The notes: generated by a model not told the origin, from the letters alone. Counted from the first letter of the stretch, positions 692 to 26,608 are shown. The stretch: 33,111 nucleotides of DNA from Macrostomum lignano (GCA_002269645.1 NIVC01004857.1:1-33111); one strand, 5' to 3'. Program-made: numbers and translations.

Positions 692-3600
692 ATGCGAGCT
701 GTTTCCAAATTTCTATTGCTTCTGGCTGTTGCGCACACCGCTGCTATCCAAGACTGTGAGTTTGAGTTGAGTTCGGGGGTTTCAACCAAGGCAATAAATT
801 CTCAATCGACAGCTTCATCACTGTTACTCGCAGGCAAAATAGAAATCCGCCGCACGCGCGTTCTCAACTCGTGGCAGTCGTCCTTCGGCAACGGTCCAAC
901 TTGCTTCCACAACAGAACTGAATCGGAGGAAGCCGCTGTGCTCAGCAAGCCCAGCAGCAGCTACAGGTTTTTTCACAGCGGGGACGGCTCGGCAGCAGAC
1001 GGCGGGTTTCACTGGTTCGCAGTGCAGCTGAGTGAGCCACTGCTCATCAGCTCAGTGACCCTGAAGGGCAGAGAATGTGAGTGGCACTGTGATGCAGCTC
1101 ATGCACGCACAGAGCTCGTTCGACTTGATTTTCTCAACTCATTCTAGACGGGAAATCGTTCACTTACTCGAGAACCAGGGGGATCGAAGTCTGGACAGCA
1201 GGAAGCAGCAGAGTGATGCTCTCGGGAGATCACTGCAGCTCCAGGAGCATGAGCAGCCAGTTCAGAGAGTCGCGGTGGTACTGGAGGCTGTGCGGCGTCA
1301 CGGACGGCCAGCAAAGAAGCATCAGGGCTGGTGAGACACTGACGGTGAACTGCACACAGGATGTAAGTGTCTCAACCAGTGCATCAATAAACTGCAGTGT
1401 TCTAATGCTTCTTTTTTGAACAAGTTATTTTTCAAATCCAGGTCCGGTACTTACTGTTGAGGCGTGACGTCAGAACTGCTGATCCTTCCATGACCCACGA
1501 CTTCATGAGCTTCGCAGACCTCAGCCTGCAGACAATGGAGCTGAGTAAGTGCTGCGGATTGGACAGAACATGCTCACCTGGACACAGTTGATAGCAAATA
1601 GCAAAAATTCTGATCACGAAAATGTTCACGAAAATTGGCACGATTCACACCCATAAGGCGCAACCCCCAAGGCACAGAGAATGCCGTCAGCATTATATCA
1701 ATTACTAACTTTGCGAAGTGTCTTCCCCTCGTCTGCAGAAGTGTCTTCCCCTGAAGAGACGGTTAGAAACGACAATGTCTCAGTCAGCTGCTCACTGCAC
1801 TGCAAAGGTACGAAAGTCGACGCGCAGACAAAAAGATTAAAGCTCTGCTCTCCTCGTGGCAGCTGCACAGCTTCCAACGCGGTACACATCCCAGAATCCA
1901 GTCAGAGGACTCAGGAAGTTACACCTGCAAGATTGGTACGGTCAGGAAGACCACCAACCTCACCGTGTATTGTGAGGCGCTCTTCAATAATTTTTCTCGA
2001 AATTATTTTCTTTCGCTTTTCAAACAACGGAAAATCCGAATGAATCCGAATCCGCAGACCCACCAACGAGAGTGGCGGTCTCAGTGCTGAACTCTCAGAA
2101 CTGCCAGAGTTTGACCCATGTGACCGTGCAGTTCACGTCTTCCTCATCGCAGCCCGTGTCTGAGCACAGATGCGACGCCAGAGTTGGAGTCAACTTGTGG
2201 AATCTCACACTGCTACCAGTAGTGCGTGCTCAAAATTGATACAGTACTGACTGACTGACTGACTGACTGACTGACTGACTGACTGACTGACTGACTGACT
2301 GACTGACTGACTGACTGACTGACTGACTGACTGACTGACTGACTGACTGACTGACTGACTGACTGACTGACTGACTGACTGACTGACTGACTGACTGACT
2401 GACTGACTGACTGACTGACTGACTGACTGACTGACTGACTGACTGACTGACTGACTGACTGACTGACTGACTGACTGACTGACTGACTGACTGACTGACT
2501 GACTGACTGACTGACTGACTGACTGACTGACTGACTGACTGACTGACTGACTGACTGACTGACTGACTGACTGACTGACTGACTGACTGACTGACTGACT
2601 GACTGACTGACTGACTGACTGACTGACTGACTGACTGACTGACTGACTGACTGACTGACTGACTGACTGACTGACTGACTGACTGACTGACTGACTGACT
2701 GACTGACTGACTGACTGACTGACTGACTGACTGACTGACTGACTGACTGACTGACTGACTGACTGACTGACTGACTGACTGACTGACTGACTGACTGACT
2801 GACTGACTGACTGACTGACTCACTATTAACTGCAAATGTCGCTGCACTGCAGAGCAAGGACGGTTACGTCAGCAGATGGGTATTTCCTACTGATGACGTA
2901 AAGAGGCTGGATATCAGCAGCGCCATCATCACTTGCTCTGCCGTGCAGAGTTTTCCGAAGGGCATCCGTATTCAGGCTGTCCACACAGACTCAACATTCA
3001 CGAGCTGTTGCAGCGGAAGTCTGGTGTCTACAGTACTGGTGCTCCACATCGCTATGGGATTTTGTTTTGGCTTCATCGCGGCCGCAGCCTCCGCGGCAGC
3101 CATCAGACTCCGAATGCTCAACCGGGTAAGTACACACTCACAATGTGGCTGACATTGTGCACCAGAGGAGGTTGCAGGCAGTTGACGAAACTTCTCGAAG
3201 ATGCTGCGAGTTGTTAGAACCATCAATTTGGATTTCTGTTGCTCATCGATTTCATCAAGACGTCAATTATGAAGTTGCTCGTCCGATTTCATCAAGACGT
3301 CACTTGTGAAGTTGCTAGTCCGATTTCATCAAGATGTCACTTGTGAAGTCGCTCGTCCGATTTCATCAAGACGTCACTTGTAAAGTCGCTCGTCCGATTT
3401 CATCAAGACGACACTTGTGAAGTCGCTCGTCCGATTTCATCAAGACGTCACTTGTGAAGTCGCTCGTCCGATTTAATCAAGACGTCACTTGTAAAGTCGC
3501 TCGTCCGATTTCATCAAGACGACACTTTGAAGTCGCTCGTCCGATTTCATCAAGACGACACTTTGAAGTCGCTCGTCCGATTTCATCAAGACGACACTTT

Positions 3601-3814
3601 GAAGTCGCTCGTCCGATTTCATCAAGACGACACTTTGAAGTCGCTCGTCCAATTTCAGACAAGGCCGGACTCCTGCGGCTCTGCAGGCTGTGCCCGGCGG
3701 CGTCCAACGGCAGGGAGACCGGCCGCAGGGGGACCGGCGGCACCGCAGTCTGCATCTGAGTACGAGAACTCGGAGTACAAGCTGGAGAATGCGACTGGAA
3801 TCTATATTCTGTGA
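692..3814 (+). CDS. Gene A: F-type-lectin-like + Ig-like type I membrane receptor (multi-exon; one apparent 1-nt frameshift)
   Basis: Exons 692-755 (signal peptide MRAVSKFLLLLAVAHTAA), 834-1076, 1148-1362, 1442-1544 (lectin domain: WQSS...FFHS...HWFAVQL...SVTLKGR...IEVW...CG...C...VRYLLLR...MSFADL), 1739-1971 (Ig-like, frameshift at ~1907), 2058-2221, 2853-3125 (TM VLVLHIAMGFCFGFIAAAASAAAI followed by RLRMLNR) and 3659-3814 (tail ending EYENSEYKLENATGIYIL*). All junctions are GT-AG with compatible phases. A small extra cytoplasmic exon near 3166-3210 is possible but unresolved. About 483 aa if the frameshift is repaired. Confidence 0.8.
2246..2820. repeat. Perfect (ACTG)n microsatellite, ~143 units, intronic in gene A
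   Basis: An uninterrupted gact run lying between exons 2058-2221 and 2853-3125. Confidence 0.98.
3238..3658. repeat. 37/36-bp minisatellite, ~11.5 units, in the last intron of gene A
   Basis: Six 37-bp units gaagtcgctcgtccgatttcatcaagacgtcacttgt (3271-3492) are followed by four 36-bp units ending gacacttt (3493-3636). There is a degenerate 5' unit and a partial 3' unit ending at the splice acceptor. No spacers. Confidence 0.95.
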
Positions 3815-4248: not shown

Positions 4249-4677
4249 AGTGTGGGGTAGGCTGTGTGGGGTAGGCTGTGTGGGGTAGGCTGTGTGGGGT
4301 AGGCTGTGTGGGGTAGGCTGTGTGGGGTAGGCTGTGTGGGGTAGGCTGTGTGGGGTAGGCTGTGTGGGGTAGGCTGTGTGGGGTAGGCTGTGTGGGGTAG
4401 GCTGTGTGGGGTAGGCTGTGTGGGGTAGGCTGTGTGGGGTAGGCTGTGTGGGGTAGGCTGTGTGGGGTAGGCTGTGGGGGTAGGCTGTGTGGGGTAGGCT
4501 GTGTGGGGTAGGCTGTGTGGGGTAGGCTGTGTGGGGTAGGCTGTGTGGGGTAGGCTGTGTGGGGTAGGCTGTGTGGGGTAGGCTGTGTGGGGTAGGCTGT
4601 GTGGGGTAGGCTGTGTGGGGTAGGCTGTGTGGGGTAGGCTGTGTGGGGTAGGCTGTGTGGGGTAGGCTGTGTGGGGT
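4249..4677. repeat. 14-bp G-rich minisatellite (GCTGTGTGGGGTAG)n, ~30 units
   Basis: Near-perfect 14-mer tandem array with one GGGG tract per unit. Confidence 0.97.
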
Positions 4678-4924: not shown

Positions 4925-5686
<762 letters not shown>

Positions 5687-5687
5687 T

Positions 5688-5700
5688 CAGGAGTAAGGAA

Positions 5701-5734
<34 letters not shown>

Positions 5735-5833
5735 ATCAGGAGTCAGGAGTCAGGAGTCAGGAATCAGGAGTCAGGATTCAGGAGTCAGGAATCAGGAGTC
5801 AGGATTCAGGAGTCAGGATTCAGGAGTCAGGAT

Positions 5834-5881
<48 letters not shown>

Positions 5882-5910
5882 ATCAGGAGTCAGGAGTCAG
5901 GAGTCAGGAA

Positions 5911-5984
<74 letters not shown>

Positions 5985-5985
5985 T

Positions 5986-6028
<43 letters not shown>

Positions 6029-6029
6029 T

Positions 6030-6070
<41 letters not shown>

Positions 6071-6078
6071 TGTCAGGA
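5688..6078. repeat. (CAGGAGT)n heptamer microsatellite, ~55 units
   Basis: Tandem caggagt/caggaat/caggatt units. Confidence 0.97.
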
Positions 6079-7056: not shown

Positions 7057-10000
7057 ATGAAGCTGACTCTGCTGCTACTGCTGCTGCTGGCATTGCTCTG
7101 CGCACGAGCGACTGACACGTGTGAGTTGAGTGCCGGCTTGTTGTAATCGCAGACAGAGAGCACTGCTCATCCCCATTGCTCCAACTTGCAGGCGAGTTCC
7201 CAATTCGTTGGAGCCGCGTGCTGAGCACCTGGCAGTCGTCCTTTGGAATCATCTTTGGAGAACCCACGTGTTTCTACCAACGAAGCAGGTCGCGTGAGGA
7301 TTCCTTACTAAACAATATAAGATACAAATTCTTCCACAGCAAAGGGCAGGGCGAGGCGGACGGCGGGTTTCACTGGTTCGCAGTGCAGCTGAATGAGCCA
7401 GTGCTCATCAGATCTGTGACTGTGAAGGGCAGAGGCGGTGAGTCACTCACTCAAATGCGGGCTCCAAGCCAGCTGTCTCTGCTCACGGTGCTCTCACATT
7501 CCAGATAAAGCATCGCATGTCTTTGAAAGAGCCAGAAGCATTGAGATCTGGACATCAGACAGCAGCAGTCAGCTGTTCTCAGGAGATCACTGCAGATCAA
7601 GGAACATGAGCAGCCAGTTCAGAGAGTCCCAGCAGCACTGGAGACTGTGTGGGGTCACGGAGAGCAACAATTCACAGATCGCGGCTGGGGAGATCTTCAC
7701 AGTGAACTGCGTTGCAGAGGTGAGTTTTGGAGCGAAATCTGGTAACCATCGCAACCGATTTCGCAACACCAACGCAACCACTTCAGGTGCGGCAGTTGCT
7801 TCTGCGAAGAAACGTTACAGCTGCTTCAACTGACCACGGCTTCATGAGCTTTGCGGACCTGCGGCTTCAAACGCTCCCGCTGAGTAAAAGCAGCTGTTCT
7901 CAAATGTTTGCTTCTTTGATTACGCGAAAAAAACAGTTATTGAGCCCTCTAATTTTGTCTGAGATGGGATACTCCCCTTTGCCTGAAGTACTCAAACAAG
8001 AAGATTCTAGCATGTTCCCTTTTACCATTTAGCCTGTACAGTTGTAAGTTTTTCAACCGAGACTGCTAGGGTAGATTTATCAGTGCTTGATTGATCCAAA
8101 CATCTCGCTTTCAGACATTTCAAGCCCTCAACTGGTGGCAGAGCAGTCCAGCTTTGAAGTTCGCTGCTCTCTGCAATGCGATGGAGCTGATCACCTGAGT
8201 ACACACTCAGCCAAGTTGCAGCTGTGCTCACCAAACGGCAGCTGCACCGTCAGGAACCAGCTGAAGGTCGACAGAGCTCAGCCATCGCACTCTGGAGTTT
8301 ACACCTGCAGAATTGGCTCGATAAATCAATCGTCTTCAATCACAATCCTATGTGAGAGCCTGATGTAGTTTGAGTTTGCTCTTATTAGTTCCTTAAATAT
8401 TAACCTGCCTGTCACAGTTAAAATGTTCCTGTAAATTAAATATAGACAGCTTTTAATACGGAGACCTTGATCATGCCATTTCGTATCGCATTCCAGCGTC
8501 ATCACCAAACCAAGTGGTTGCTGAGAACTCCAGCCTCACGCTGAACTGCACTCTGCACTGCGGAGGCGGCGATGCAGCTCAGTGCGCAGACTCCGCTGCT
8601 GTCGGACAGCTGCTGCTGTGTCGCCCCAACAAGACCTGCACAGCACAGACGAGTCTGCAGATCCCAGCGGCAACTGCAGCACAATCGGGAGACTACAACT
8701 GCAGCATTGGACAGGTGGTTGCTGTCACAAGTGTGGCTGTTCTCTGTGAGTAGCAGCTTTGCACCTGAGTGGTCAGTCACTGTCTGCATGTACATCGCTG
8801 ACAAATGAAGTCATTCCTGTTTGTTATTTTACAGCTGCAACGCCGCATCAAGTGGTCCCTGAGGGCTCCAGTCTCAGCCTGGGCTGCGTACTGCATCATG
8901 CGGGCTCAGCTGATTTCCGCCAGCCTCAGCTGTGCTACCCGAACGGCAGCTGCTCAGCTGAGAGCTCGATAAGCGTTGCCAGTGCCAGGCCATCGAACTC
9001 CGGTCTCTACAGGTGTCGGCTCGGCTCACTGGAAATACCGTCACTTGTTGCTGTGCTGTGTAAGTTGCTCAGATCATCTTACACTTTCTTGCACTCTCAG
9101 TTTCTGAACAAGAACTGATCAGTTTCTCTGTGGATCAGTAAGTGATCAGTCTCCAGATTCATTCTTGTACAAAAGTAAGAGTTTCTCTACTGACAAGTGT
9201 AGCATGCTTAAGCAGGCAGTTCGGGCACCTATAGTTTGCACTCCGTGACCCCCACCCAGCCTATCCACTTCCCTCTGCTCGAGCACATCCCAACGCGCAC
9301 TCAATGAACTGGTAATCTGTGTTCTACCAGACAACACTCGTTAATATACAGACACAGCCACATTCTATTTCTCCACCGTTTTGAGTGGCTAACTATGCAC
9401 TCGCAACAACCAGCTAGAGTTGCTCGCTACAACAAGTAGAAAGCAATGAGTGTGGCGATTTATTCCTGCATGCAAGGCAAAAAATGTGACCAAGTAAGAG
9501 AGCAGAGTTCTGGTAGGAGTTCCGACTTGAGCTTGGATGAAGACGTATGAGTATGAACATGATCAGAAAAATCCATCTCAGGGTCGATATTCTACTCGTA
9601 CTTTTAAGCAGCTGTGCACTCCAAGTGGGGACTGCCGACACAATCAGCAGATCCACATTGCTCATGTGAAACATCTGTCAAAATTACTTCAAGTCGCTGT
9701 TCTGAGTGAGTCATTGATTAGCTTAAAATGCTTTCACTAAAGATGGCAAGGATGCATTCGATAGGACACGGAGATTTTTTCCACCAAGAACTTCCATTTC
9801 AATAGAATAGAAATAGGCTCAGTTTGAATAAATTTATGTATCTGAAATTTATTAAATTCCCAGCTTCATCTCCGAGCCAGAAAGTTTCCGAAAACGCAAG
9901 CTTCACCGTGAGCTGCTCTCTGCACTGCGGAAATGCATCGCAATGCTCAGACCGTCCACTGGGTGGCGACCTCCGGCTGTGCCCTCCGAATGGGAGCTGC

Positions 10001-13000
10001 CTGACAAATTCAAGTGGACAGAGCTCAGGCAATGCACTCCGGAGTTTATACTTGCAGATATGACGTCATTGAGATTGAGACAGAAGTCTTTGTTCTTTGT
10101 GAGTAGAAAGTAGGCTGCCTTCAGAATCTTGTTGCTCAGTGTTGCTCAATGTTGCTCAGTGTTGCTCAGTGTTGCTCAATGTTGCTCAGTGTTGCTCAAT
10201 GTTGCTCAATGTTGCTCAGTGTTGCTCAGTGTTGCTCAATGTTGCTCAATGTTGCTCAATGTTGCTCAGTGTTGCTCAGTGTTGCTCAATGTTGCTCAGT
10301 GTTGCTCAGTGTTGCTCAGTGTTGCTCAATGTTGCTCAGTGTTGCTCAATGTTGCTCAGTGTTGCTCAGTGTTGCTCAGTGTTGCTCAATGTTGCTCAGT
10401 GTTGCTCAATGTTGCTCAGTGTTGCTCAGTGTTGCTCAGTGTTGCTCAATGTTGCTCAATGTTGCTCAGTGTTGCTCAGTGTTGCTCAGTGTTGCTCAAT
10501 GTTGCTCAGTGTTGCTCAGTGTTGCTCAGTGTTGCTCAATGTTGCTCAATGTTGCTCAAGTGTTGCTCAGTGTTGCTCAATGTTGCTCAATGTTGCTCAA
10601 TGTTGCTCAGTGTTGCTCAATGTTGCTCTGTTTGCTCAGTGTTGCTCAGTGTTGCTCAGTTTTGCTCAGTGTTGCTCAGTGTTGCTCAGTGTTGCTCAGT
10701 TGCTCAGTGTTGCTCAGTGTTGCTCAGTGTTGCTCAATGTTGCTCAGTGTTGCTCAGTGTTGCTCAGTGTTGCTCAGTGTTGCTCAATGTTGCTTAATGT
10801 TGCTCAGTGCTCAGTGTTGCTCAGTGTTGCTCAGTGTTGCTCAGTGTTGCTCAATGTTGCTCAGTTGCTTGCTCAGTGTTGCTCAATGTTGCTCAATGTT
10901 GCTCAATTGCACAATCGATTAACTCACCTTCATCAGGTGAGTTCCCAGTTCGGCGAAGTCGCATTCTGAGTTCGTGGCAGTCATCATTCGACGATGGTCC
11001 GACGTGTTTCCACAGCAGGAATCAGGCAGACGAAGCCTCCATCATCAGCAACAGGCAAACCAGCTACAAGTTCTTCCACAGCGCCAACAGAAGCCAAGCA
11101 GACGGCGGGTTTCACTGGTTCGCCGTGCAGCTGAATGAGCCAGTGATCATCAGATCTGTGACTTTGAAGGGCAGAGAGGGTGAGTGAAAGACAACTTACT
11201 TCTTCTTTCTGCCTTAGGCTTCTGTAAAGACTGAGTCTCCTGCTCTGAAGATTCCACCGTACAGTAATATGTTTCAGTAAGATCAAAAGTAACTCCTCAT
11301 CTTATTTTCAGACGGTGTGATATATAATTATAATCGAGCAAAGGACATTGAAATATTTACCTCCAACTCTAGCAGCTCCCTGATCCATGGGGATAACTGC
11401 AACATCAGGAATATGGGCCTTCAGTTTAAAAATTCGATGCACCTTTGGAGGCCATGCGGCGTAACTAAAAAGCAGGGAGACGTCGCAGATGGAGAAATGT
11501 TTCACGTGAAATGCGTTGCTGAGGTAAAAATATTTCAAATATCTGCAGTGATTTGAGTCTTATGGTCTCTTAAAGCAACCTGAAATGATGAGCATTTAAA
11601 CTGCAGGTCCGAAGTCTACTCCTGCGAAGAAACGTGTCTAAAGACACGGACGGGCACATGAGCTTTGCTGACCTGAGGCTTCAGACTGGGAAAATCAGTA
11701 AGATTTTTGAGCTGTCATGAGTTGTGTCCAAGTCCTGGTGTGTGTGCTAAGTTGAAGCGCTAGCAGTACATGCAAAATGACTGAAGTTCGTCTCAAAAGT
11801 GTCTCAAATCATTGCATTTCAGAAGTCGAGAGCCCCAAGGCGGTGCTGCAGCACTCAGCATTCTCAGTGCGCTGCCTTTTGGACTGCAACGGTCGAACCG
11901 AATTCTCACCGAAGTTGGAGCTCTGCCTTCCAAACGGAAGCTGCGTTGGACAAGCTGAAGCCGTCATTCACAGGGCGCAGCTGTGGCACCATGGAAACTA
12001 CACGTGCAAGCTGGGCAGCTCGCGGAGCTCAAAGTTCTTAACGGTGTTTTGTAAGTTGATTCCGGCCTCTGGATGACAGTCGATTGATTAGCATTTGGTT
12101 ACAGCAGCGTTGCACTGGGACTCCTCTCGTACACAGATTGGGACAAAATTCTCAGTGTATGCTCACAAGGAGTGCAAGCTTAAGGCTGACTGGTGGCAGT
12201 AGGAGCAGCCTTCAACGGCAGCAGATCAGACTGCATTTCAGGTCACCTTTCTATTAGCCTTTTATCCTTACAGGGTATGTCAACTAAGTCCGGAAAGGGA
12301 AACGGATTGTCAAAGGGGTGGTTTCTCTCTCGGACGCCATTATTGGATCCACCAACCAGTGTAGAACGATCGATGGAGATGTGTACATATTCAAAATATT
12401 CACATAGACTTTTGCACTCAAATGATGTGGAGTAACTTCTATTCATCTTCGGTACGGTATTCAATACGTATCGATCCACGGCCTAAATAGGTTTGAAAAA
12501 ATCATGAAAACCATCAGATAACTGAAAAGCTTATTGATCGAACTTGATGAACTCCATTCCCCTTTTTAATATGCTCACAGACCCGCCATCAAGCGCATCA
12601 ATTTCTGTACTCAATCTGCCAACCTGCGAGAACTCATCCGACGTATTGGTACAGTTCGCATCGTCTGCATCTCTACCAGTGCCCGAGCACAGATGCAGCG
12701 CTGTTGGTGGCGGATTGGAAGTGCGAAACCTCACGCAGCTGTCATTTGTGAGTCGCTTGCATTTTGCACTTTCACACTATGAGTGACTACGCGCTGACAT
12801 GCTGACCAGCGAGCTTCATCAATTCCAGAGCTCGTGCGGAGACGGTTGGGTCAGCACGTGGGCACTGGCGATCGGGGGGAAGCTGAGCTCAGAGTGGCTT
12901 GTGGGCCTCGTCGAGTGCAGCGCAGTGCAGAATCTGCCGCCGGAGATCCGGTTCAAGGCCGAGCACAGGGCCTCAGCTTGCTACAGCTGCGGCAGTCACA

Positions 13001-13438
13001 ATGGTCTCATCAAACCTGATGTGCAGTCCTTACACATGTACATTTCACAGTTCTTGTACGGATTTCTAACAGCAACTGCTCTGCTAAGTGTGCTCTTGCT
13101 TGTCTTGGGCTCGGTGAGTAACCCCTCTCTCTAAATTATATTTTCCGTCTCTGTGCTCTAAGCTGCCGTGTTGCATCTGCTAACTTCAGTTTTCAGTCAT
13201 CAAATTCAGAGTAACAAAGTCGTGGACAAAACAAACTATTCCAATGGTAAGCTTTGATTTTCTCAATCTGTACAGTCGACTCAAACTGTGACAGCTAAAG
13301 TTCGAACTCTTTGCGCTTTAGTCTGATCGATCCACGACGCCTGGATCTGGAGCACCGGTTGCTGCCGCTTCTGCTTCCATGGAGTATGAGAACTCTGGTT
13401 ACAACCTGGAGGATGCTACTGGTGTCTACGTGACCTGA
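7057..13438 (+). CDS. Gene B: double-lectin receptor, SP-FTP-Ig-Ig-Ig-(two decayed Ig)-FTP-Ig-proximal module-TM-Tyr tail
   Basis: Exons 7057-7120 (MKLTLLLLLLLALLCARATDT), 7192-7437, 7505-7719, 7787-7883 (lectin 1), 8115-8351, 8497-8745, 8835-9059 (Ig-like), 10937-11179, 11312-11523, 11607-11697 (lectin 2), 11823-12050 (Ig-like), 12581-12747, 12829-13113 (TM), 13190-13246 and 13322-13438 (tail [19 protein letters not shown]). The exon sum is 2733 nt = 910 aa + stop, open throughout when the two defective Ig exons are skipped. It could instead be two partial genes (7057-10098 and 10937-13438). Confidence 0.72.
9582..9705 (+). pseudogene. Decayed Ig-like pseudo-exon in gene B
   Basis: It keeps the family motif QLCTPSGDC and the terminal VAVL plus a phase-1 GTGAGT donor at 9706. 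It lacks the B-strand Cys region and the SGxYxC strand, and I found no phase-compatible acceptor. The start coordinate is approximate. Confidence 0.55.
9864..10098 (+). pseudogene. Frameshifted Ig-like exon in gene B
   Basis: Good acceptor (ttcccag) and donor (gtgagt). The first frame gives VSCSLHC...LRLCPPNGSC and a second frame continues VDRAQAMHSGVYTCRYD...VFVL. The exon is 235 nt (not 3n). Only 13 nt lie between the Cys codon and VDRAQ (10001-10013), versus 21 nt in the paralogous exon at 8115-8351. Confidence 0.75.
10130..10907. repeat. 10-bp minisatellite (TGTTGCTCAG/TGTTGCTCAA)n, ~77 units
   Basis: Two unit variants (G or A) are interspersed. The array fills the intron between the last Ig exon and lectin 2 of gene B. 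Confidence 0.97.
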
Positions 13439-13459
13439 GGGTTTTCAAGCTGGCAAAGT
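12517..13459 (+). repeat. Near-identical segmental duplicate of 25687-26629
   Basis: Constant offset of 13170 with no indels, and 29 substitutions in 943 bp by manual count (~97% identity). Confidence 0.95.
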
Positions 13460-14865: not shown

Positions 14866-15329
14866 GCCTAATTCGATTTATTGTTCTCAGTTCATGAGGA
14901 TGTGTTTATCCCAGAGCTAGATTTACCGTACACATAGGCCAATATATTTTATTTTACTGCGCTTGATACACATTAGAAATAATGACGCAACACTCCCGAA
15001 TACTGTAAAACAGTTTTGAAGCCGACAGTTCAATTACCAATATCACCTGATCTGTTTGATGCAGAAGCAAAATTCTTTTGATAGTTTTTTCAGAATTTAT
15101 TCACAATTCACTTTTTTTCCAATAAACCATATGATATATAGTATTAGCCAATGCTAAACATAGCTGTGCCTTAAGCTACATCATATCTAGCCTAAAGTCT
15201 AAAAGCTAAGCACTGCAGGTCATTTGATGTTTTCAACAGTTTAATATTGGTCCAAGACTTTTTAAAACAAATTTATATTACCATACCTAATTTCATACTA
15301 AATTATATTAAAAAACAACAATATACACC

Positions 15330-16110: not shown

Positions 16111-16457
16111 GTCAACCTAAAGTAGTAATAATCTGCAGTACATGTACAAAGACAAGTAAACTGAGACAGTGTACCATTAAATTCGCATCTGGATTTTTGC
16201 ACTTCCGAATTCCAAATAGAGCTCTGTCAGGCGAAATTTCAGCTGTTCCTGTCTGTTTGAAATTATTGAGTTATAGTTTAATAAAAGTTTCATCATTAAG
16301 CAACGATGCATTGCATAAATGCAAAAGAAAACTCTATTTCAGCAATTCCTATACTGGAGTTAAATTGGAGGAGTAAGTGGGCGCAGGGCCCAAACCGATA
16401 TTTAATGGTATTTATACCAGACATTAACTTTGGGGGTTGAGCCCAGAATAATAAGGA

Positions 16458-16492
16458 GAGGGGGGCGGAGGGAGACTGGAGAGCCAATCAGA
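16458..16492 (+). promoter_or_regulatory. Possible GC box + CCAAT box upstream of gene C
   Basis: gggggcggag followed by agccaatcag about 720 bp upstream of the gene C ATG. Motif match only. Confidence 0.3.
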
Positions 16493-17210
16493 AGGCGGCG
16501 AGGGAGACAGAGATAAGAATAACAAGATTGAGCTAGACAGAGGGCCTTTTCATATTGCTTGTTCTGGTTCCAGAACCAGAACCAATTTGTGAAGTATAAC
16601 TTTTTGTCTCCATAACTAGAGGGAGATACGTGCTATAAAGTTTTTATTATTGAATGACAATCGCCAAGAAGAAAGTGAAAAATTGTGCTAAGTGAGGTTG
16701 TTAAGGCAGTCAAACATTCAACAGAGTTAAATAGTTATACTGCTGTTTTTCTTGGAAGATCCGAACCGATTCTGATTCTGGAATTGGTAATATGAAAAGC
16801 CTCAGAGAGAGAGGTGAACTAAGAAATGACTAGGAAAGTCGCGACACCTGCAGAGTCAGAGACGGCCAAGCAAACTCAGTCCCCATCGGAGCCAAGAAAC
16901 CCAAATATGATTTTCGTCGCTTATTCAAACCAAGTTCAGTTTGGCCAAGGACTTCTATTATCTAGAAGTCCTTGGTTTGGCTAAGCTGCAGCCAGAGAGT
17001 TTGTAAACATTTTATTTCAACTTGCAGTCTTATACACAGATGGAACTTGTAGTCACCACCTGCCGGAACAGAACTTGCGACTGCAGCCCTGCATCAATGG
17101 TTTCTGCAGCCAAATACAAAAGCCATGACACAAGATCAAAATGGATTCTTTTTTGCTGCGCTTGTTGTACTAACGACAGAATTGCTTTGAAGTGATCAGC
17201 AAGTGTCTGC

Positions 17211-20200
17211 ATGATGGAAGCTGCAGCGCTGATATCCCTGTTAGGGGCTCTGCTCTGCATCGCTACCTGTCTCTGCGACTGTGAGTGAAAGCTTTTTAAA
17301 CCCTCCAGGGTGTTTTTTCAAGCGAAATGGATTTCTAACTTCTCAAGTTCCTATGTTGCAGGTGGGGTGCCGATTCGCAACAAGACTGTACTCAACGCCT
17401 GGCAGTCCTCTTATTTCTATTCTTGCTTTCACGAGAGAGACCAGCTGAATGAGAGCAATGTTCTGAACACAAGCCAAAGTTTTCAGTTCATTCACAGCAA
17501 TGACAAAAAGCATTTTAACGATAGCGGATTTCACTGGTTCGCTGTGCAGCTGAGTGAGTCAGTGCTCATCGGTTCTGTGACAGTGAAGGGCAGCGAGGGT
17601 GAGTTACACCACAGACCAGTTTTATGAAGCACTGATTGACTAGTTGGTTAACTTACTTGACATAGCTTCAGGGAGTCCGGGCATCCGGATGCAGCGAGGC
17701 GTCGCCGCCCATTTTGCGAACCCCTGGCGACCAGGGAAGCTGGTGCTGCGGTGTTCTGCAGGGAGATCCGGTGGTGCCAGTGTCCGCAGCGCGGTAGCCC
17801 TTAGGTAGCGGACGAGCTGGCAGAGATTCTCGGGCCTGAAAACGTCGGAGAGGTCCGAGTTTGGGCTGAGGTAGGTGAAGCCTGTCCTGAGTAAAGGCGG
17901 AGCATTCACAGATGAAGTGCTCCGCATTCTCGACACCGGAGAGGCAGAAAGGGCATCATTCCTCGCTACGGATTTTTCCTGAAGGTAACGATGCCTGGCA
18001 AAACAGCCATGACCCGAGAGGTCCATGGTCACGGCCCTGATGTCCCTGCGGTTGAGTCCAAGCAGGACTCTTGGCTAGTTGGTTGATTTCATAAAAAACA
18101 GCAGCTGCTTTTTATTGACTGTCTAAGCTGGATGCTGTAATTTAACCCTAAAGTCATCGGTTCGCTTATGAAACTAAATCACTGCAGCATTCCTGAAACC
18201 CTCTTTCTTCCGGTATTTTTACAATCTCGTTGATCTGGCAATAATTTCAGTCTTCTCGGATGCTGAAATGTTCCGCAGCTCAGCTGGCATCGAGATCTGG
18301 ACTTCGAACTCAGAGGAGCAACTGTTTTCTGGCAATCACTGCAACTCAAAAAATATGAGCAAACAGTTTAATAAGTACCTGAGCAGTTGGAAGCGTTGCG
18401 GTGTCACTACAAATAGGTCGATGAGTAGCACACGTAATGGGCTCTACATGGTGGACTGTCTTGCAGAGGTGAGCATTGATGCTACAGAGATTATGTGCTT
18501 AATTAGTTCATCTCACCCGGATCTCAAAATGTTGAGTGCAACATCCCAGGTCCGGTATCTGCTCCTCAGGAGAAACGTGAGCCTGAGCTTCTCAGCCAGA
18601 GACTACGGCTATCTGAGCGTCTCAGATCTGACGCTGCAGACAGTGCGCCTGGGTGAGGCTGTGGACTTTCCCAAAGCACTTGAAGACCAGAGAAGCCTCA
18701 AAAGTGGCATGAAAATATCTGATAATATTGTGGGCTTTGGCCTGACTTTCTAGTCATCAGGCTTGTGCACTCTCTGTGCATTGGGGGCTGGCCTTCATGG
18801 GTCATGAATGACACGAGAACTGCCACGGTAAATAGCATTATAGCATTAAAGTATAAATTTATATGACTTGATTTGCAGTACCATCGACAGACCAACTTGT
18901 TGCTGCAAACGAAAGCTTTAACGTGAGCTGCTCGTGCATTCTATGCAACGGCACGGAGTTGAGCACGAACTCAAGGCAGCTGCAGCTGTGCCAACCAGAC
19001 GGAAACTGCACGAAAACCTGGAAGCTGTCGGTTGTGAAGGCACAGTCGCAGCACTCTGGCCTCTACACCTGCCAGCTTGGCTCTGCCGCAGAGTCAACTT
19101 CCGTCACAGTGCTGTGTGAGCTGAGTGTCATTGCTTGTCTCCATATTTAAATACAATTAATAGACAAAAAGCAACCATAACGTGTTGATTTTCAGCATCC
19201 TCGCATGCGCAAACAGCAGCCGAGAACGACAGTTTTGCAGTGAGCTGCACGCTGTACTTCAATGGTTCGGAGATCATTGGTAACAACACAAGCGGCATGC
19301 AGCTGTGCCAACCAGATGGGAACTGCAGTGCGGGCCCGGAGCTGCGGATCAACAGGGCGCTGCGGCAGCACTCCGGCAGCTACACCTGCCAGGTGAACTC
19401 CACTCGAGTTTCAACCTTCGTTACCGTGCTGTGTGAGTTTCATTTCAATTTGAAATTGAATGGATAAAGAAAGGCCCTTTAACTCATCTGAAATGTTTGT
19501 TATAGCCCAACAGAAACTTAGAAAATAAGTTTCCACTTGACTAAATAGCTTGTGATACAGATGATGATGTCGTTGTGTTGTTGTTGCTGCTGCTGTTGTT
19601 GTTGTTGTTGTTTTTTTTTTGTTGTGCTTTTAAACCTGATGTAACCGCCCTTGTCGCCTGTCCGCTCCGTAGAGAGACGAACGAGGGGGGGGGGAGACGA
19701 GAGAGGGGGCAATGACCGTAGGCTGCCTATGACCGGGCAATGACCTGACGGACCTCCAGCACCAGACTGTCCCGTCCACATGATTGATAGCTTTGGTAGT
19801 GCTTCGTGACCAGAGGGCCAAGGACCCACATGGACCCCACCTGCAGCCAAGGTGCAAAACCTGCAGCAAAGGCTGCCACCACTCTATGTGACCTGGCGCA
19901 CCTGGATCTTTCTACCAGACCTCTCGAGGCTAGAGCCCCGCCTGGGGTGGTTACCAGGAGATTTAGGCTAACAGGGGAGACACATGCAGCCGAGTACAGG
20001 GACTCTGCTTGGGGCATGATCGGGAACTCTGGGCTCAATCTGGAGGATTTCTCAGCAGGGGATCCTTTGTGGCTGTGAGCGAGGCTGACTTGCGACTTTG
20101 ATTACTAAGAGTAGTATGAGGCGAACATCTACTGTCTCTAGTTTAGATTGCTCAGGGCGAAGGGACGCGTCAGCATGGGGGTTGCAACCTTCCTACTGCC

Positions 20201-23200
20201 ATTCTGTGCCAAGACTCGCTAATCCCTCTACTGCACGCACACACGGCCCCGCAGCACGCACTCACAGACGAGCTTTGCACGGGGAGAGGCCATTAACTTA
20301 CCCAAACTTCCCTATGCTTTGCCACCCCGGGAGAAAGGCTTAGCAAGCCATGAGTGAAATGATGGTGAAAGAGTGAATAATGATGAGGTTAGTTAATAGT
20401 TAATAATTAGGCCCTTAGGCAAATAACCAGGCAATTAGGCGGCTTCACTATTGAGTAAAAATACAGCAAAAGGTACGGTATCACAACTGGCTCAGCCCTC
20501 TAATCAGACAATGGAAAATAGGCAAACCCCGGATAAGCAAAGGCAATTAGAGCACAAATCAGTAACAGGAACTTACCGGCAGCTGCACAGAGAGAGAGAG
20601 AGAGAGAGAGACGGAGTGACCGAGGGTGGCTGTAGGCTGCAGTCAGGCGGACAGTGAAGCGGCGATGCGCTGAAGCGACGAGGCGCTGGTGTAGATCAGG
20701 CGAAGCTGATGATGCTGGGCGGTGTCAGACCGCTGGCCAATAGGCGAGCTCACTTGGGGAGCTGAAGATAACTTGGCGGTATCAGACCGCAGACCGGCAG
20801 GGATTCGTCTTATAGACGAATGGGTCAGAACTCAGTCTGACGGCAAGTCTAAAGAAAGACTAGGAGCCCGAAGGTGGGCAAAAGTTGAGTCTTCTCATGC
20901 CGAAAACCGCCTCCTTTTATAGCCTTCCCAGCCGCCGCTCCAAGGTCGTTTCCATGGCTCCCTCTCTCTGATTGGCTGCCGGCCGAATGACGTCAGAATG
21001 AGTCATGATGAGAAACATGAGACCGGCATAGCAACATGAGAAATAGGGAAATTGCGCAATCCGGAGGTGGGGTGGGGGGATAATTGGCGCAGCGGGTGGT
21101 CGCGAAAGTGTTGCGCAAGCAAACATTGAGAACAATAGGGCTGGGGTCGAGAACAAAGGAATTGGAAATCGGGGATAATTGGGGAGAATCGAGAACAATA
21201 GAAAAGCAAACATTGGAGAAAAGGTGATAATTAGGTGCGAAAACGAGAACAAAAGAAAGAGAAAATCGGAGAAAATGTGATGATTGGTGGGGGTAAAGAG
21301 AACAAAAGAATCAAAAACGAGAACAATAGAAGCGGAGGTGGGGTGGGTGTCGCATGAGAAATTTGGGGAGGAAAACAATAGCATGAGAAAAGGTTGCGCA
21401 AGAGAGGGGATGAGTCATCGATGAGTCATCGAGGGGAAGAAGGGGTCACACGACTTGCGTCACCGTTTGGGAGTTTGGGAAGGGATGGGAGGTCGATGAG
21501 CACACAAAATACTGTAAGTAGACGCAGAGAAAGAGGGGACAGAGCAGGAAAATAGTGCAGAGAGAGACAAAGAGAGGGGGGATGGGGAAAGTACAAGAAG
21601 ACTAGGGTGGAGCGCAGGGGAGATAAGGTAGAGGGGGGAGGTACAGAGAGGGATAGGGAGCTCCGGAAAGGCAGGTGTGGCGGCAGGGGAGACGGAGTCA
21701 AGGCAGCAGGAGGGTGCAGCAGAGCGGGAGTCTCCAGGCCTGGCCGGAGACCTAACCGAGTCTCGACAGCTCTGCGCAGGGGAGGTGCACGGGATAGGAG
21801 GCACCTTCGAAAAAGTTCCCATGCCCTATCCCGCGACCAGAGCGTGGTTACATCAAACCAATGAGATATAGTCAAGTCAGTTGGCACGAGACGGGCAGGT
21901 TCGAGCCTGGCCAATCCAAACCAAGAAAGTTCGACAGAGAGAGAGTTGGAGCGCGCTAACCCGGCGAGACAAGCCATGCACAGCCGCCCTTGTATCCGAA
22001 TCCCGAACAGATAGGTAGCGAAACACCGAGTTGTCCTTCCAGTCACCCAGCTTCTTGATGATCATCAGCAGTGGAACACCGAGCTGCATGGCTGCTGTAG
22101 CGCCGCGCCGCCGCAGCCTGTGGCTAGTGAACTCACGTGGTGACAAACCCGCCGATGTGTACAGAGTGCGAAGCCGGCCATCAAACCTGCTAGCCGTCAG
22201 AGGCAAACATCCCGTTGCCGACCACGTGGAGAACAGGTGAACCGGACGCGGCGCCTGGCCGATTCGGTTTGTCCGTAGCTGCCGCTCGAGCGCACGGAAC
22301 GGGCACAGGACACCCAAGCTCCCATCAGGCAGTTTCGGAAGAAACACTCGCTGAACTCGGTCGCCAAACTGGTTGGTCTTTGAATGCCGTACGGTGAGCT
22401 CACAGTCGCACTTTGAAAAGACGATGTTTGATGCCGCCAGGTTGCACCACAGATCTAGCCGCTCCGATTGCATCCGATCACATTCGCTTTCCGCAGCATA
22501 CCCCACCAGGCTGCCAGAACAGCTGCCCAGAACGCGATGTCACTCTTCTTTCGTTGGTCCAGGTGGGCGTTCAGCTTGAGGAGATCTGCGATTCTGAGGG
22601 GCTCCCTTGAGCACTGCTACCGACTGAGACATCAGCGAAGACCACAGACCACAACGCACCAGCTTAACCATCGGCGACTCACACGGGTCCGGCCGACCGA
22701 GGGCTCTGAAGTACAGCGAGACCGCGTTAGCGTACGCCTGGCAACTCCGAAAGACTGACAGCCGGGTGACAACTCGGCCACTTACACGGCCACGTGCACC
22801 GGCTGCGCGCGCACCGGTGTCAAGTGCTAGGAGTTGCAAAAACACAGCCAGGACGCGAGCTGCGACCGGTAACTCCGCTTTGTGTGGGGCCAGCAGGGCC
22901 GAACGGAGACAGCAGGGCAGAAAGCATGGCTGGCGATTTCATTAAAACAGCAGTTTACAGTGCCATACACTCAAAATAAAAATCGCGCATCTTGCCTACC
23001 GCGTGCAGCCGAGAGCACGGGTCCGCAAAAACGAGGCACCAGCCAGGCATATGAAAAGTGCGCACCTCAACCCCACGCCTAACAGCAATGAGCATGGCAG
23101 TCTGGAACAGCGGCTGCAACTCAGGCTGCCGGCAGCAACCTCTGTTATCATACCAACAGCCGCGACTACGACCGTAGTAGACCACGACCGAACCGTCATT

Positions 23201-26200
23201 TAAAAAGACACTCCAGCGAACCATAGCCAATAGCGGAACAATAGCGTCTTTGTACGTGATATGCTTGTCTTTAAACTTTCCTCCAGCATCCAGATCCCAA
23301 TTGACATACAGCCAATCCATCATTCCGCTACCATTGCGCAAAATGGCACCACCACCAGCACTGCTGGCATCGGTTTCGATGATCCAGCCGTTTGTGCGAC
23401 TTCTCCAAAGCTGAAAATCAGGCAGCTTCAGAAGGGCACCGCGCCACCAGAGTAAAATACGCACAGTGTCAGCGGACACTCGTACTTTGTGATGTGGCTT
23501 TTCCAGGGCATTAGGCAAGTCGAACAGGGGCCTGAGGAAGCAACTCCCAGCGTGCACCACTTGGACGACCCAGCTGAGCTTGCCACAAAGCGACGAAAGC
23601 TGGCGTTTCGAGAGACGCCTGCTCTGCGAGAAATTAAGCAGTGTGGTGCGCATTTCCTCACACTTTCCCGCCGGCACACTAAGAACTCCACGGACAGTAT
23701 CAATCTTCACACCGAGATACACCAAGCATTGCGTAGGTTCAACCACTTTGTTCCAATTGACACCAAAACCCAACTGGCGAACCAACTTCATCAGTTCTTT
23801 CAGGGCATCCATACACTCCTCCTCGCTCTCGGCCGCAACCAGAAAATCATCCAGGTAGACCGAACTATTGGCCACACCGGTCGCACCATCATCCTCTTGA
23901 CCGCTTGAGTAAGCCGGTAGAAAATCTCGACCGAGGCGCAGCTACCAAAGGGTAGCCGGGTGTCGATTAGCCATGTCAGATCACGGTTGCCTTTAAAGCG
24001 CTAACCAATGCCAGTCGCCTGGTAATCATCCGGATGAATCGCCACACTTCTGTAAGCTTGCGACAAATCAAGCTTTGCCATGAACCAGCCCTTGCCGATA
24101 GAGGCTGCAGCCTTCTTGACGGACTCAAACTTAGGGCTCAGCTTCCTCGTATAAGTGTCTTTTACCGAGTAGCCCGGAGGCGTGCTGCAGTCATGAATAA
24201 GTCGAACCTTCCTGTTATCCTTGGGAATAGCTCCCAGAGGGCTGACCATCGTCGGCTTCTCAGGCACCACCACGTATCTGCCATTCTCAGTCTCTTCCTT
24301 AATTTGCAGCTTCGCAGAGTTCAGTTCTTGTCGAATGGTTCGCCTCATGGTGGGCCTCAAAACAGATACGGCAAACATGTCGGAATTTGCAGCTTGAAGT
24401 GCAAGTAGATCTCTAGCCCGTCTGCCGTTCTGAGGCTCTTGGGGTCTATTGGTTTTGAAAACGCTGCTGCCATGGCTGGGGCAATGACTTGCTGACTCCA
24501 TGGTTTGCTCGAGTTTCAGTTCTGATTAAGTGCTTAGCAACGAGTTGGAAAGACTCCTTGCCCCAGCACATACCAGTTTCAGCTTGCCTAGTGCGTTAGT
24601 CCTCTTCAAAACGGTTCACCTGAGCAAGGCCGAAGCCCGCGTCAAACAGCTCGCCTATCTGTATTGAGTAGCGTAGGTGATTCATCAAATCAGTCGTGTC
24701 GGCAATTCCATTCCTATTAGTCACCAGGGCACCATCCTTGATCATTTGCATCATCAGCCTGCCATTGCCTACCAAATACTGCGCTGCTGTGATGCTATTA
24801 TGTTTTCTGCTCTTGTAAGTGATTCGGCCACCAAAATCATTAGCCAGCACCTCTTTCTGCTCAAAGCCGTCAAGGAAATCACGAATCAGGAGAGCCTTAC
24901 GCCTGCCCGAACACTCCATCCGTTCATTAGCCCTGTTCCGTGACAACAATCTACCAAGCAGCTCATTGCCATTATCTTCCTGGTCTAATCCAGCATCATC
25001 CCACACTTCAGGAAAGCAACTGGGGGCAGCAGGCTTGGCACACTCACCGCGATTCATAGGATGGACACTCGCGTTGCAGATCTCCGATCTCCCTCTTGAG
25101 TTTAGCGGCTTCCTTGTGTAGCTGCAACAGTCTGATCTCCTCTTCCACCTTCGCGATGTCCTCGTCCAGGCCCGCCGCCGACTCCCGAGCCGCCTCCGTA
25201 CTGATGTTGTCGTCTGCATCGGCTTCTTGCTCATATTGCTCCATGTTCTGCAATAGCGAGTCTGTTCACGACTGGTCTGGGGCCGCGAGCAAGGCGCTGA
25301 CAAGGTCGGCCTTATTGCCCCGACTGCTTACATTAGCGTGGGCACACAAGGCTTGCAGAGCCACCTTGCTCAGGTGCATGAGTTTCACGCGGTCCGCCAT
25401 TGCAAAAAGAATCGATACGCACTTGGCAGGCCATAGGCAGCCCGCCCCACATTAAATAAAGGCACATAAACCGGGGGCACGGGACCAAAGGCCCGGCCCA
25501 CCACCCCCCTGCACCAACGCACAAGAGCCACCCCCACTGGTTTAACACCCAACCAAGCTACGCCCGGCCGGACCAGTTATTATTTAAGCTCAATCATCCC
25601 TCTTATTTGCAAAAAAGTTGCTGTGCAAACATCTGCTGTGCAGAAGTCTGGCCCAGCCAAATTAACCAATAAATCCGCCTTAATTCGATAACTGAAAAGC
25701 TTATTGATCGAACTTGATGAACTCCATTCCCCTTTTTAATACGCTCACAGACCCGCCATCAAGCGCATCAATTTCTGTACTCAATCTGCCAACCTGCGAG
25801 AGCTCATCCGACGTATTGGTACAGTTCGCATCGTCTGCATCTCTACCAGTGCCCGAGCACAGATGCGGCGCTGTTGGTGGCGGATTGGAAGTGCGAAACC
25901 TCACGCAGCTGTCATTTGTAAATTGCTTGCATTTTGCACTTTCACACTATGAGTGACTATGCGCTGACATGCTGACCAGCGAGCTTCATCAATTCCAGAG
26001 CTCGAGTGGAGACGGTTGGGTCAGCACGTGGGCACTGGCGATCGGGGGGAAGCTGAGCTCAGAGTGGCTTGTGGGCCTCGTCGAGTGCAGCGCAGTGCAG
26101 AATCTGCCGCCGGAGATCCGGTTCAAGGCCGAGCACAGGGCCTCAGCTTGCTACAGCTGCGGCAATCACAAAGGTCTCATCAAACGTGATGTGAAGTCCT

Positions 26201-26608
26201 TACACATGTACATTTCACAGTTCCTGTACGGATTTCTAACAGCAACTGCTCTGCTAAGTGTGCTCTTGCTTGTCTTGGGCTCGGTGAGTAACCCCTCTCT
26301 CTACATTATATTTTCCGTCTCTGTGCTCTAAGCTGCCGTGTTGCATCTGCTAACTTCAGTTTGCAGTCATCAAATTCAGAGAAAAGAAGTCGTGGACAAA
26401 ACAAACTATTCCAATGGTAAGCTTTGATTTTCTCAATCTGTACAGTCGACTCAAACTGTGACAGCTAAAGTTCGAACTCTTTTCGCTTTAGTCTGATCGA
26501 TCCGAGACGCCCGGATCTGGAGCACCGGTTGCTACCGTTTCTGCTGTCATGGAGTATGAGAACTCTGGTTACAACCTGGAGGATGCTACTGGTGTCTACG
26601 TGACCTGA
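17211..26608 (+). CDS. Gene C: SP-FTP-Ig-Ig-proximal module-TM-Tyr tail receptor
   Basis: Exons 17211-17280 ([23 protein letters not shown]), 17362-17598, 18251-18468, 18550-18652 (lectin), 18879-19115, 19196-19432 (Ig-like), 25751-25917, 25999-26283 (TM), 26360-26416 and 26492-26608. The sum is 1728 nt = 575 aa + stop with no internal stops. Intron 19433-25750 (6.3 kb) contains transposons. Confidence 0.8.
17650..18074 (-). mobile_element. 5'-truncated LINE (CCHC end) in intron 2 of gene C, with a 10-bp TSD
   Basis: Minus-strand frames give [10 protein letters not shown] and [18 protein letters not shown], with a short caagtaag tail. The TSD ctagttggtt lies at 17640-17649 and 18075-18084. 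Confidence 0.88.
19637..21855 (-). mobile_element. Probable solo LTR (2219 bp) with TG...CA ends and a 4-bp TSD
   Basis: Perfect 10-bp terminal inverted repeat TGATGTAACC...GGTTACATCA, with AACC on both flanks. It has no credible ORF and carries an internal minus-strand CCAAT/TATA promoter. A short-TIR non-autonomous DNA element is not excluded. Confidence 0.7.
20913..21430 (-). promoter_or_regulatory. LTR-borne promoter/enhancer: TATA, CCAAT, CRE, 3x AP-1, 3x C/EBP-type palindromes
   Basis: Minus-strand TATAAAA (20921-20915) and AGCCAATCAG (20977-20968); TGACGTCA 20988-20995; TGAGTCA at 20999, 21411 and 21422; TTGCGCAA at 21052, 21111 and ~21394. Motif matches only. Confidence 0.55.
21877..22900 (-). 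pseudogene. Tyrosine recombinase of the DIRS/Ngaro element (fragmented)
   Basis: [27 protein letters not shown] (H-x-x-R), [13 protein letters not shown] (catalytic Tyr region). An N-terminal piece [14 protein letters not shown] lies in another frame. Confidence 0.9.
22955..24400 (-). pseudogene. RT/RNase H of the DIRS/Ngaro element
   Basis: [38 protein letters not shown] and IETDAS (DIRS-type RNase H). Stop at 24001-24003 and a frameshift near 23880. Confidence 0.92.
24330..25400 (-). pseudogene. Gag-like ORF1 of the DIRS/Ngaro element with a SAP-like N-terminus, coiled coil and Cys/His finger
   Basis: ATG at 25400 gives [38 protein letters not shown], then the coiled coil [31 protein letters not shown], then ALLIRDFL, and C-terminal [18 protein letters not shown]. 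It contains an in-frame stop at ~25267 and frameshifts. Confidence 0.75.

Follow-up and report, generated by a model that had tools for sequence, protein, structure and literature searches.

Three tandem genes of the flatworm Macrostomum lignano are predicted to encode single-pass membrane proteins with galactose-binding-like and Ig-like domains and a tyrosine-bearing tail

Cell-surface recognition and innate immunity of flatworms are poorly charted. In other invertebrates, chimeras of immunoglobulin (Ig) and lectin-type domains are encoded by multigene families such as the Biomphalaria FREPs and the amphioxus VCBPs. These are secreted proteins with N-terminal Ig domains and a C-terminal fibrinogen or chitin-binding domain. 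Here, we describe a 33,111-nucleotide (nt) stretch of DNA (the window) from Macrostomum lignano, a free-living macrostomorph flatworm (GCA_002269645.1, NIVC01004857.1:1-33111), which carries three tandem genes, A, B, and C. Their predicted products also combine Ig-like with lectin-like domains in a multigene family, but the domain order is reversed, the lectin-like domain has another fold, and a transmembrane (TM) segment and a tail are present. Pfam searches found no fibrinogen or chitin-binding domain in the window proteins. A preliminary description, made by inspection of the sequence, had compared the family with FREPs and VCBPs; given the missing domains, the TM segment, and the reversed order, that comparison holds as an analogy only.

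A distal galactose-binding-like domain on a single-pass receptor is also found in discoidin-domain receptors (DDRs), neuropilins, and Drosophila Furrowed, a membrane protein with an F-type lectin domain. The window proteins differ from these in having no kinase, CUB, MAM, or CCP domain, and an exhaustive profile search (1.84e9 representative proteins) detected no sequence relationship to DDRs, neuropilins, or Furrowed. Siglecs are a functional analogue rather than a relative. They share with the window proteins the tandem clustering, the single-pass topology, a distal domain set on Ig spacers that vary in number, and a short tyrosine-bearing tail. The lectin domain of Siglecs is, however, a V-set Ig domain, whereas that of the window proteins has a galactose-binding-like fold and their tails are without the immunoreceptor tyrosine-based inhibitory and switch motifs (ITIM, ITSM).

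The window is eukaryotic in character, with short GT-AG introns, plentiful satellites, and retroelement fragments; tRNA and Rfam features were searched for in the window and none were found. All three genes are on the + strand and follow one common GT-AG exon plan. Every intron was placed at canonical GT-AG sites, and gene A, initially spliced by hand, served as tblastn query. The preliminary description had placed a tandem receptor family between positions 692 and 26608, and this span proved exact: gene A starts with its ATG at position 692, and the stop codon of gene C ends at position 26608. The shared exon blueprint and the tandem paralogy that it had proposed are borne out by the GT-AG models, in which the phases match. 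The signal exons of A, B, and C have 64, 64, and 70 nt and each end in phase 1. The lectin-like domain of about 185 amino acids (aa) is split over three exons (243-246, 212-218, and 91-103 nt in most copies; individual exon coordinates are given below). Each intact Ig-like domain is encoded by a single exon of 225-249 nt running from phase 1 to phase 1. The proximal module is encoded by two exons, the second of which includes the TM segment, and the tail has an exon of its own. In the feature lines, HMM denotes hidden Markov model, AF2 AlphaFold2, and KD the Kyte-Doolittle hydropathy peak.

692..755, + strand: gene A exon 1, predicted signal peptide MRAVSKFLLLLAVAHTAAIQD, ending in phase 1 (GTGAGT donor; exon 1 of B and of C has the same design)
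834..1544, + strand: gene A lectin-like domain, exons 834-1076, 1148-1362, and 1442-1544 (tblastn; GT-AG model; 98% identity to UniProt A0A1I8JJS2, P0013)
1739..1971, + strand: gene A Ig-like exon, 233 nt, with a -1 frameshift at a CCC run near 1888 (tblastn, Ig HMM)
2058..3125, + strand: gene A proximal beta-sandwich module and TM segment, exons 2058-2221 and 2853-3125 (model, P0013 match; AF2 beta-sandwich)
3659..3814, + strand: gene A tail exon, ending in SEYENSEYKLENATGIYIL and the stop codon (splice model, P0013; AATAAA at 4078)
7057..7120, + strand: gene B exon 1, predicted signal peptide MKLTLLLLLLLALLCARATDT, phase 1 (KD 2.0)
7192..7883, + strand: gene B lectin-like domain 1, exons 7192-7437, 7505-7719, and 7787-7883 (tblastn, splice model)
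8115..9059, + strand: gene B Ig-like domains 1-3, exons 8115-8351, 8497-8745, and 8835-9059, phase 1-1 (Pfam Ig_2 E 2.7e-13; Ig HMM E 1e-29 to 1e-37)
~9606..9668, + strand: decayed Ig remnant 'LCTPSGDC' in a gene B intron (hmmsearch E 3.4e-4, HMM positions 34-54)
9864..10098, + strand: gene B Ig-like exon of 235 nt, frameshifted by +1 in a run of AAA near 10003, with its AG and GT sites preserved (tblastn, HMM)
10937..11697, + strand: gene B lectin-like domain 2, exons 10937-11179, 11312-11523, and 11607-11697 (tblastn, splice model, P0010)
11823..12050, + strand: fourth intact Ig-like exon of gene B (tblastn, splice model, P0010)
12581..13438, + strand: gene B 3' cassette, proximal exons 12581-12747 and 12829-13113 (with TM segment), tail exon 13322-13438
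17211..17280, + strand: gene C exon 1, predicted signal peptide, phase 1 (KD 2.44)
17362..18652, + strand: gene C lectin-like domain, exons 17362-17598, 18251-18468, and 18550-18652 (tblastn, splice model; AF2 target)
18879..19432, + strand: gene C Ig-like domains 1-2, exons 18879-19115 and 19196-19432 (tblastn, splice model, Ig HMM)
19433..25750, element on the - strand: 6.3-kb intron of gene C with a degraded DIRS-like retroelement (Pfam)
25751..26608, + strand: gene C 3' cassette, proximal exons 25751-25917 and 25999-26283 (with TM segment), tail exon 26492-26608

The tblastn search with gene A returned the four copies of the lectin-like module listed above, all on the + strand (E-values against A of 3.7e-48, 2.2e-46, and 2e-19/7e-17). 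Six Ig queries returned eight Ig-like exons in the window, to which the HMM added one further short remnant. Queries with the proximal module and the tail located exactly three 3' cassettes (proximal module, TM segment, and tail). The domain counts given in the preliminary description thus stand for B (two lectin-like, four intact and two decayed Ig-like domains) and for C (one lectin-like and two Ig-like domains). They do not stand for A, whose single Ig-like exon is frameshifted and not intact. The three-gene cluster is real and, the broken Ig exon of gene A aside, had been described accurately.

The predicted open reading frames (ORFs) of B (891 aa, 14 canonical exons) and C (556 aa, 9 canonical exons) are intact. 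That of A (405 aa from 7 exons) is intact only when the Ig exon is skipped and a GTGCGT donor at 2221 is used. It is 98% identical to P0013 (UniProt A0A1I8JJS2), the public model of a near-identical copy, which is also without the Ig exon. Public gene predictions (P0013, P0010, P0004) reproduce many junctions of the three models. UniProt A0A1I8H768 (P0010) is identical to the B model at 176/176 residues, spanning the junctions between the second and third exons of lectin-like domain 2 and between this domain and the following Ig-like exon. The UniProt fragment P0004 matches the C lectin exons at 185/189 aligned residues, the mismatches lying where the P0004 model reads through the last donor. 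We consider the structural description, that is, the predicted gene anatomy, fold class, and topology taken by themselves, to be highly probable.

The Ig-like assignment, proposed earlier from inspection, is well supported. On gene B, Pfam Ig_2 scores 50.4 bits (cut-off 27, E 2.7e-13) and ig scores 33.8 bits (cut-off 21.8), and the intact Ig exons conserve the B- and F-strand cysteine signatures FxVxC and SGxYxC. They carry an additional LCxPNGxC pair, and the canonical C-strand tryptophan is absent. The proximal module is a beta-sandwich in the AF2 model (pLDDT, the predicted local distance difference test, 68.6). Because its Ig- and fibronectin type III (FN3)-like matches are weak (E>=0.014) and the pLDDT has this value, we limit its designation to beta-sandwich. 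Hydropathy shows one TM peak in each of the three proteins, as expected from the proposed single-pass topology; in gene A, it has a KD value of 2.25 at residues 324-342. An N-terminal hydrophobic segment is seen in B and C; that of A is below the cut-off. Each protein has 5-18 N-glycosylation sequons.

The predicted cytoplasmic tails have 38-57 aa. They cannot be aligned apart from a C-terminal motif, [DE]YENSxYxLE[ND]A[TA]G[IV]Y[IV]x-COOH, with three conserved tyrosines, which is common to A, B, C, and a distant paralogue, P0001. From the conservation of this motif it is reasonable to infer a signalling tail.

We consider it probable, with some reserve, that the cluster belongs to a lineage-restricted family of type I single-pass glycoproteins with a likely glycan-binding distal domain and a phosphotyrosine tail. 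From outside to inside, the proteins would consist of a signal peptide, one (A, C) or two (B) distal domains, a stalk of 0-4 Ig-like domains, the proximal beta-sandwich, the TM segment, and the tail. As to the ligand class, the phosphorylation, the adaptor, and the biological role of the family, we infer a course of the following kind. The distal domain would bind an extracellular ligand, probably a glycan, through the loop face that is used in F-type lectins and in CBM32 modules. Once engaged or clustered by the ligand, the receptor would become phosphorylated on its tail tyrosines and recruit an SH2 adaptor. A YxN site is preferred by SH2 domains of the Grb2/Drk type, and the YxN site of the tails (YEN), the only one of the sites searched by regular expression that matched in A, B, and C, would fit such an adaptor. 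The family may have immune or signalling roles. This combination of glycan binding and phosphotyrosine signalling is put forward tentatively and is less well founded than the architecture.

For the distal domain, F5_F8_type_C (PF00754) is the best Pfam match (34.5 bits on the two-domain protein B, cut-off 28.2), limited to the central third of the domain, the HWFAVQL...KGRED stretch. The check proposed in the preliminary description, an AlphaFold model searched by Foldseek for a galactose-binding fold, gave a beta-sandwich for the gene C domain (pLDDT 71.7; predicted TM-score, pTM, 0.77) and 47 hits in the PDB at E<=1e-3, with TM-scores (a measure of structural similarity) of about 0.35-0.52. 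The list is led by CBM32 modules of EndoS, ZmpB, and chitosanase DD1/DD2 (E ~4e-5, TM 0.44-0.52), followed by the F-type lectins lectinolysin, MsaFBP32 (3CQO), SpX, and AAA (1K12) (E 3e-4 to 1e-3). Other hits are SUN, the XRCC1 N-terminal domain, and BIRC6/HECTD3, which we read as sharing the galactose-binding-like fold class.

True F-type lectin sequences from the PDB served as the comparison set for the family assignment. The window domain has the same beta-jelly-roll class as AAA of the eel (1K12), MsaFBP32 of the striped bass (3CQO), lectinolysin, and SpX-1, and the same motif order (QSS, H-S/T, W-x-V-x-L, R-x-D, R), at about 20% identity. In a joint alignment it is collinear with AAA and MsaFBP32 over the whole domain, with equivalents of Arg79, Asp81, Arg86, and Cys108-Cys124. 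The two domains of B, B1 and B2, hold the equivalents of all three of Arg79, Asp81, and Arg86. An hhalign comparison pairs GR[GE]D...R of the family with NRGDCC..R of the F-type lectins, and two cysteines with Cys108 and Cys124 (LCGV / VxC). There are also clear differences: the spacing from His to Arg is 31 residues rather than 24-26, RxD is followed by a loop with 3-5 additional residues, the alignment shows no vicinal Cys pair (Cys82-Cys83 equivalent) in the window domains, a 17-residue insertion (HC...QF...W) is present, and the domain resides on a TM protein with Ig-like domains. A terminal Cys-Cys bridge, which is typical of discoidin domains (F5/8 type C), is not evident in the window domain either.

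Part of the evidence from motifs and profiles weighs against a glycan-binding, signalling family. Single lectin-like domains reach at most 22.3 bits on PF00754 (cut-off 28.2), and five of six members match at E<=5. The strict fucose motif H-x(24-26)-R-x-D-x(4)-R/K is found by regular expression in none of the four window domains (0/4), while AAA and domain D1 of MsaFBP32 match it. When the pattern is relaxed to H-x(24-34)-R-x-D-x(4-9)-[RK], B1 and B2 alone among the four are matched. In place of Arg79, C carries Ser, and in place of Asp81, A carries Tyr. Regular expressions run on the tails of the three proteins found no ITIM, ITSM, immunoreceptor tyrosine-based activation motif (ITAM), YxxPhi, or NPxY; the immunoreceptor motifs were tested as [SIVL]xYxx[IVL], TxYxx[VI], and YxxL/I-x(6-12)-YxxL/I.

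The same results bear on the reading of the preliminary description, by which the distal domains are bona fide F-type (fucose-binding) lectins on diversified innate-immune receptors analogous to FREPs and VCBPs. The designation as F-type lectin stands as far as the motif order, the collinearity with AAA and MsaFBP32, and the equivalents of Arg79, Arg86, and Cys108-Cys124 are concerned, and the hhalign pairing and the tandem expansion with differing domain numbers at two loci speak for this reading. It does not stand with respect to the strict motif, which the positive controls match. The hhalign probability of 32% (E 4.7e-4, 69 columns) and the score on PF22633, which is 18.2 bits here (cut-off 27.8) as compared to 86 for AAA and 68 for lectinolysin, also weigh against it. 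In addition, an hmmsearch of PDB sequences with the family profile gave no hit at E<=10. We thus consider bona fide fucose-binding immune lectins highly improbable. Because of the fold results taken together with the hhalign, alignment, motif, and PF22633 tests, the assignment of the distal domain to the galactose-binding-like superfamily is solid, and its F-type-lectin-likeness is plausible. Candidates for its nearest family are F-type lectins, CBM32, and discoidin.

A protein ligand has to be weighed as well. The discoidin domains of DDRs bind collagen and the neuropilin b1 domain binds peptide C-termini. The window proteins might accordingly be adhesion or cell-cell recognition molecules, active in tissue adhesion or in gamete or partner recognition rather than in immunity. 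The fucose-binding motif is not kept across the paralogues, the fold class includes non-lectin binders from the Foldseek list (SUN, XRCC1 N-terminal domain, BIRC6/HECTD3), an Ig stalk with a short tail is typical for adhesion molecules, and fast turnover and lineage restriction would also suit reproductive proteins. We nevertheless regard this as unlikely, since carbohydrate-binding modules and F-type lectins head the structural matches, and B1 and B2 retain the Arg/Asp/Arg equivalents.

The exon organization suggests how a receptor family of the favoured kind may have diversified: with module exons bounded by phase 1, Ig exons could be gained, lost, or skipped with the frame kept. Gene B is the most complex case. 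A division of B into two genes was considered and rejected: neither a signal exon nor an in-frame ATG precedes lectin-like domain 2, whose junction with Ig3 keeps the phase, and B therefore reads as a single gene with two lectin-like domains. Lectin-like domain 1 of B is closest to a paralogue on M. lignano contig NIVC01002544.1 (82.6% nt identity), and the first exon of lectin-like domain 2 is closest to P0001 (75% aa). For this reason, B seems to have arisen by the fusion of two paralogue lineages and not by a recent duplication within the gene. An open frame runs past the donor of Ig3 and reaches a stop within an ORF ending at 9118; a secreted short B isoform is possible through this read-through.

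The 3' parts of B and C are far more similar than their 5' parts. Segment 12517-14869 is repeated at 25687-28075, and the genic part is 94-99% identical (~97%), in exons and introns alike, with a breakpoint that precedes the first proximal exon by 64 bp. The 5' parts of the two genes show only about 45-50% aa identity. This difference points to a recent duplication of the proximal-module/TM/tail cassette, or to conversion between B and C. The full duplicated block (12517-15242 vs. 25687-32593) comprises the cassette, a repeat array, and the distal flank. None of the changes accumulated in the cassette (13 nonsynonymous, 3 synonymous) affects the TM segment or the terminal motif.

Further observations, on the genes themselves, count against a family of working receptors at this locus. 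The two halves of the gene A Ig exon match the Ig HMM in different frames, and its length of 233 nt indicates the -1 frameshift. Its inclusion (1739-1971) leads to premature stops though its splice sites are intact; likewise, inclusion of gene B exon 9864-10098 leads to a stop with its splice sites still intact. As these sites are kept, inclusion of either exon would truncate the protein. Gene C requires splicing over the 6.3-kb retroelement-bearing intron (19432 to 25751). The ratio of nonsynonymous to synonymous changes per site (pN/pS) since the cassette duplication is about 1.5, a value based on small numbers. Arrays of (TGATCC)n at 13459-14869 (1.4 kb) and 26629-32208 (5.6 kb) start within 20 nt of the B and C stop codons. 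The first AATAAA lies only past these arrays, at 15121 (B) and 32459 (C), so the 3' untranslated regions of B and C would have to traverse them. Finally, the region of C from Ig2 through the proximal module and TM segment to the tail has no match among 5.8e9 predicted proteins; since the first word-indexed search also missed P0004, a fragment with 100% identity, absence from such a search is weak evidence. With the Ig-proximal-TM-tail region of B and C unmatched among predicted proteins, full-length B and C are unannotated.

Such features might be taken as signs of a decaying cluster, in which A, B, and perhaps C are pseudogenes or relics and working members reside elsewhere in the genome. The frameshifted Ig exons with intact splice sites, the invasion of introns and 3' flanks by retroelements and satellites, the pN/pS value, and the lack of annotated full-length B or C would all be in line with decay. 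We consider this very unlikely: ORFs of 891 and 556 aa that are open over 14 and 9 canonical exons would hardly persist without selection, the tail motif and the domain core are strictly conserved, and the near-identical copy of A is annotated as a complete protein (P0013). Both frameshifts (~1888 CCC, ~10003 AAA) concern a single base in a 3-nt homopolymer in otherwise well conserved exons, and they could reflect very recent decay or long-read consensus errors. The Ig exon of gene A is a pseudo-exon, unless its frameshift stems from an error in the assembly.

Among 5.8e9 proteins, the word-indexed searches retrieved M. lignano proteins only; the exhaustive profile search with HMMER, over 1.84e9 representatives, gave 21 hits. 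The source of 13 of these 21 relatives was checked, and all are from M. lignano except one protein from a metagenome contig. This sole non-M. lignano relative, P0017, is encoded on a JGI/IMG metagenome contig of 1598 bp (E 9.6e-19) and presumably stems from an unsampled relative in the environmental sample. The relatives are unnamed or carry unrelated automatic names, and searches of the literature turned up no account of the family. The earlier remark that no named family was recognised is upheld by the profile search and the literature. The family is, as judged from these comparisons, undescribed and so far restricted almost only to M. lignano; its general architecture is familiar.

A second tandem cluster is present in M. 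lignano on NIVC01002544.1:89160-111382 (local coordinates 10163-21231). Its members are a lectin-like domain with TM segment (P0002), a lectin-like domain with three Ig-like domains and proximal module, and a lectin-like domain with two Ig-like domains and proximal module, corresponding to 0, 3, and 2 Ig-like domains. Some of its tails (P0002-type) differ in kind, ending in an ITSM-like TVYLEI (TxYxxI). The same locus holds minus-strand relics at 2083-2196 and 8687-8809 (local coordinates) and a protein-kinase gene at its start.

Several repeats and mobile elements lie in the window. Within gene A, (ACTG)145 occupies 2246-2824 inside the proximal-module intron, and a 37-bp x11 minisatellite is found at 3247-3657. 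Between genes A and B lies a retrotransposon fragment on the + strand (5008-5674; RNase H tail and zf-RVT, probably non-LTR), which is flanked by (GTGTGGGGTAGGCT)30 at 4250-4677 and (AGTCAGG)56 at 5685-6078. In gene B, a (TGTTGCTCAG)78 satellite at 10130-10905 separates the decayed Ig exon from lectin-like domain 2. The 652-nt intron of the C lectin-like domain contains a 130-aa ORF on the - strand (17640-18032) which has no Pfam match and may be a repeat fragment. The DIRS-like element in the large C intron extends over ~19500-25500 on the - strand, with a reverse transcriptase at 22955-23875 (RVT_1 E 1.2e-6) and a tyrosine-recombinase-like region at 21877-22506 (Phage_integrase E 5e-5) on separate broken ORFs; more broken ORFs are at 24001-24501 and 24596-25303.

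With 21 relatives among 1.84 billion proteins, the near-orphan distal domain is a case of a lectin-type fold that has diverged past the reach of profiles. The locus also illustrates modular evolution, with module boundaries in phase 1, an apparent two-lineage fusion gene, and a 97%-identical TM/tail cassette in diverged neighbours. At its most far-reaching, and we consider this quite unlikely, the family would serve macrostomid-specific immune or self/partner recognition, with an orphan binding domain derived from F-type lectins on modular phase-1 exons, a repertoire reshaped by the gain and loss of exons, the fusion of genes, and the exchange of TM/tail cassettes among neighbours, and a new tri-tyrosine signalling motif (YENSxYxLExAxGxYxx-COOH) outside ITAM, ITIM, and ITSM. 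Lineage-specific expansions of Ig-superfamily and lectin-like proteins are common in invertebrates, and the family would be another of these if the tail does not signal; if it does, a motif class would be added beyond ITAM and ITIM. As M. lignano is a regeneration model which is transgenic and amenable to RNA interference, this lineage-restricted receptor-like family is directly testable.

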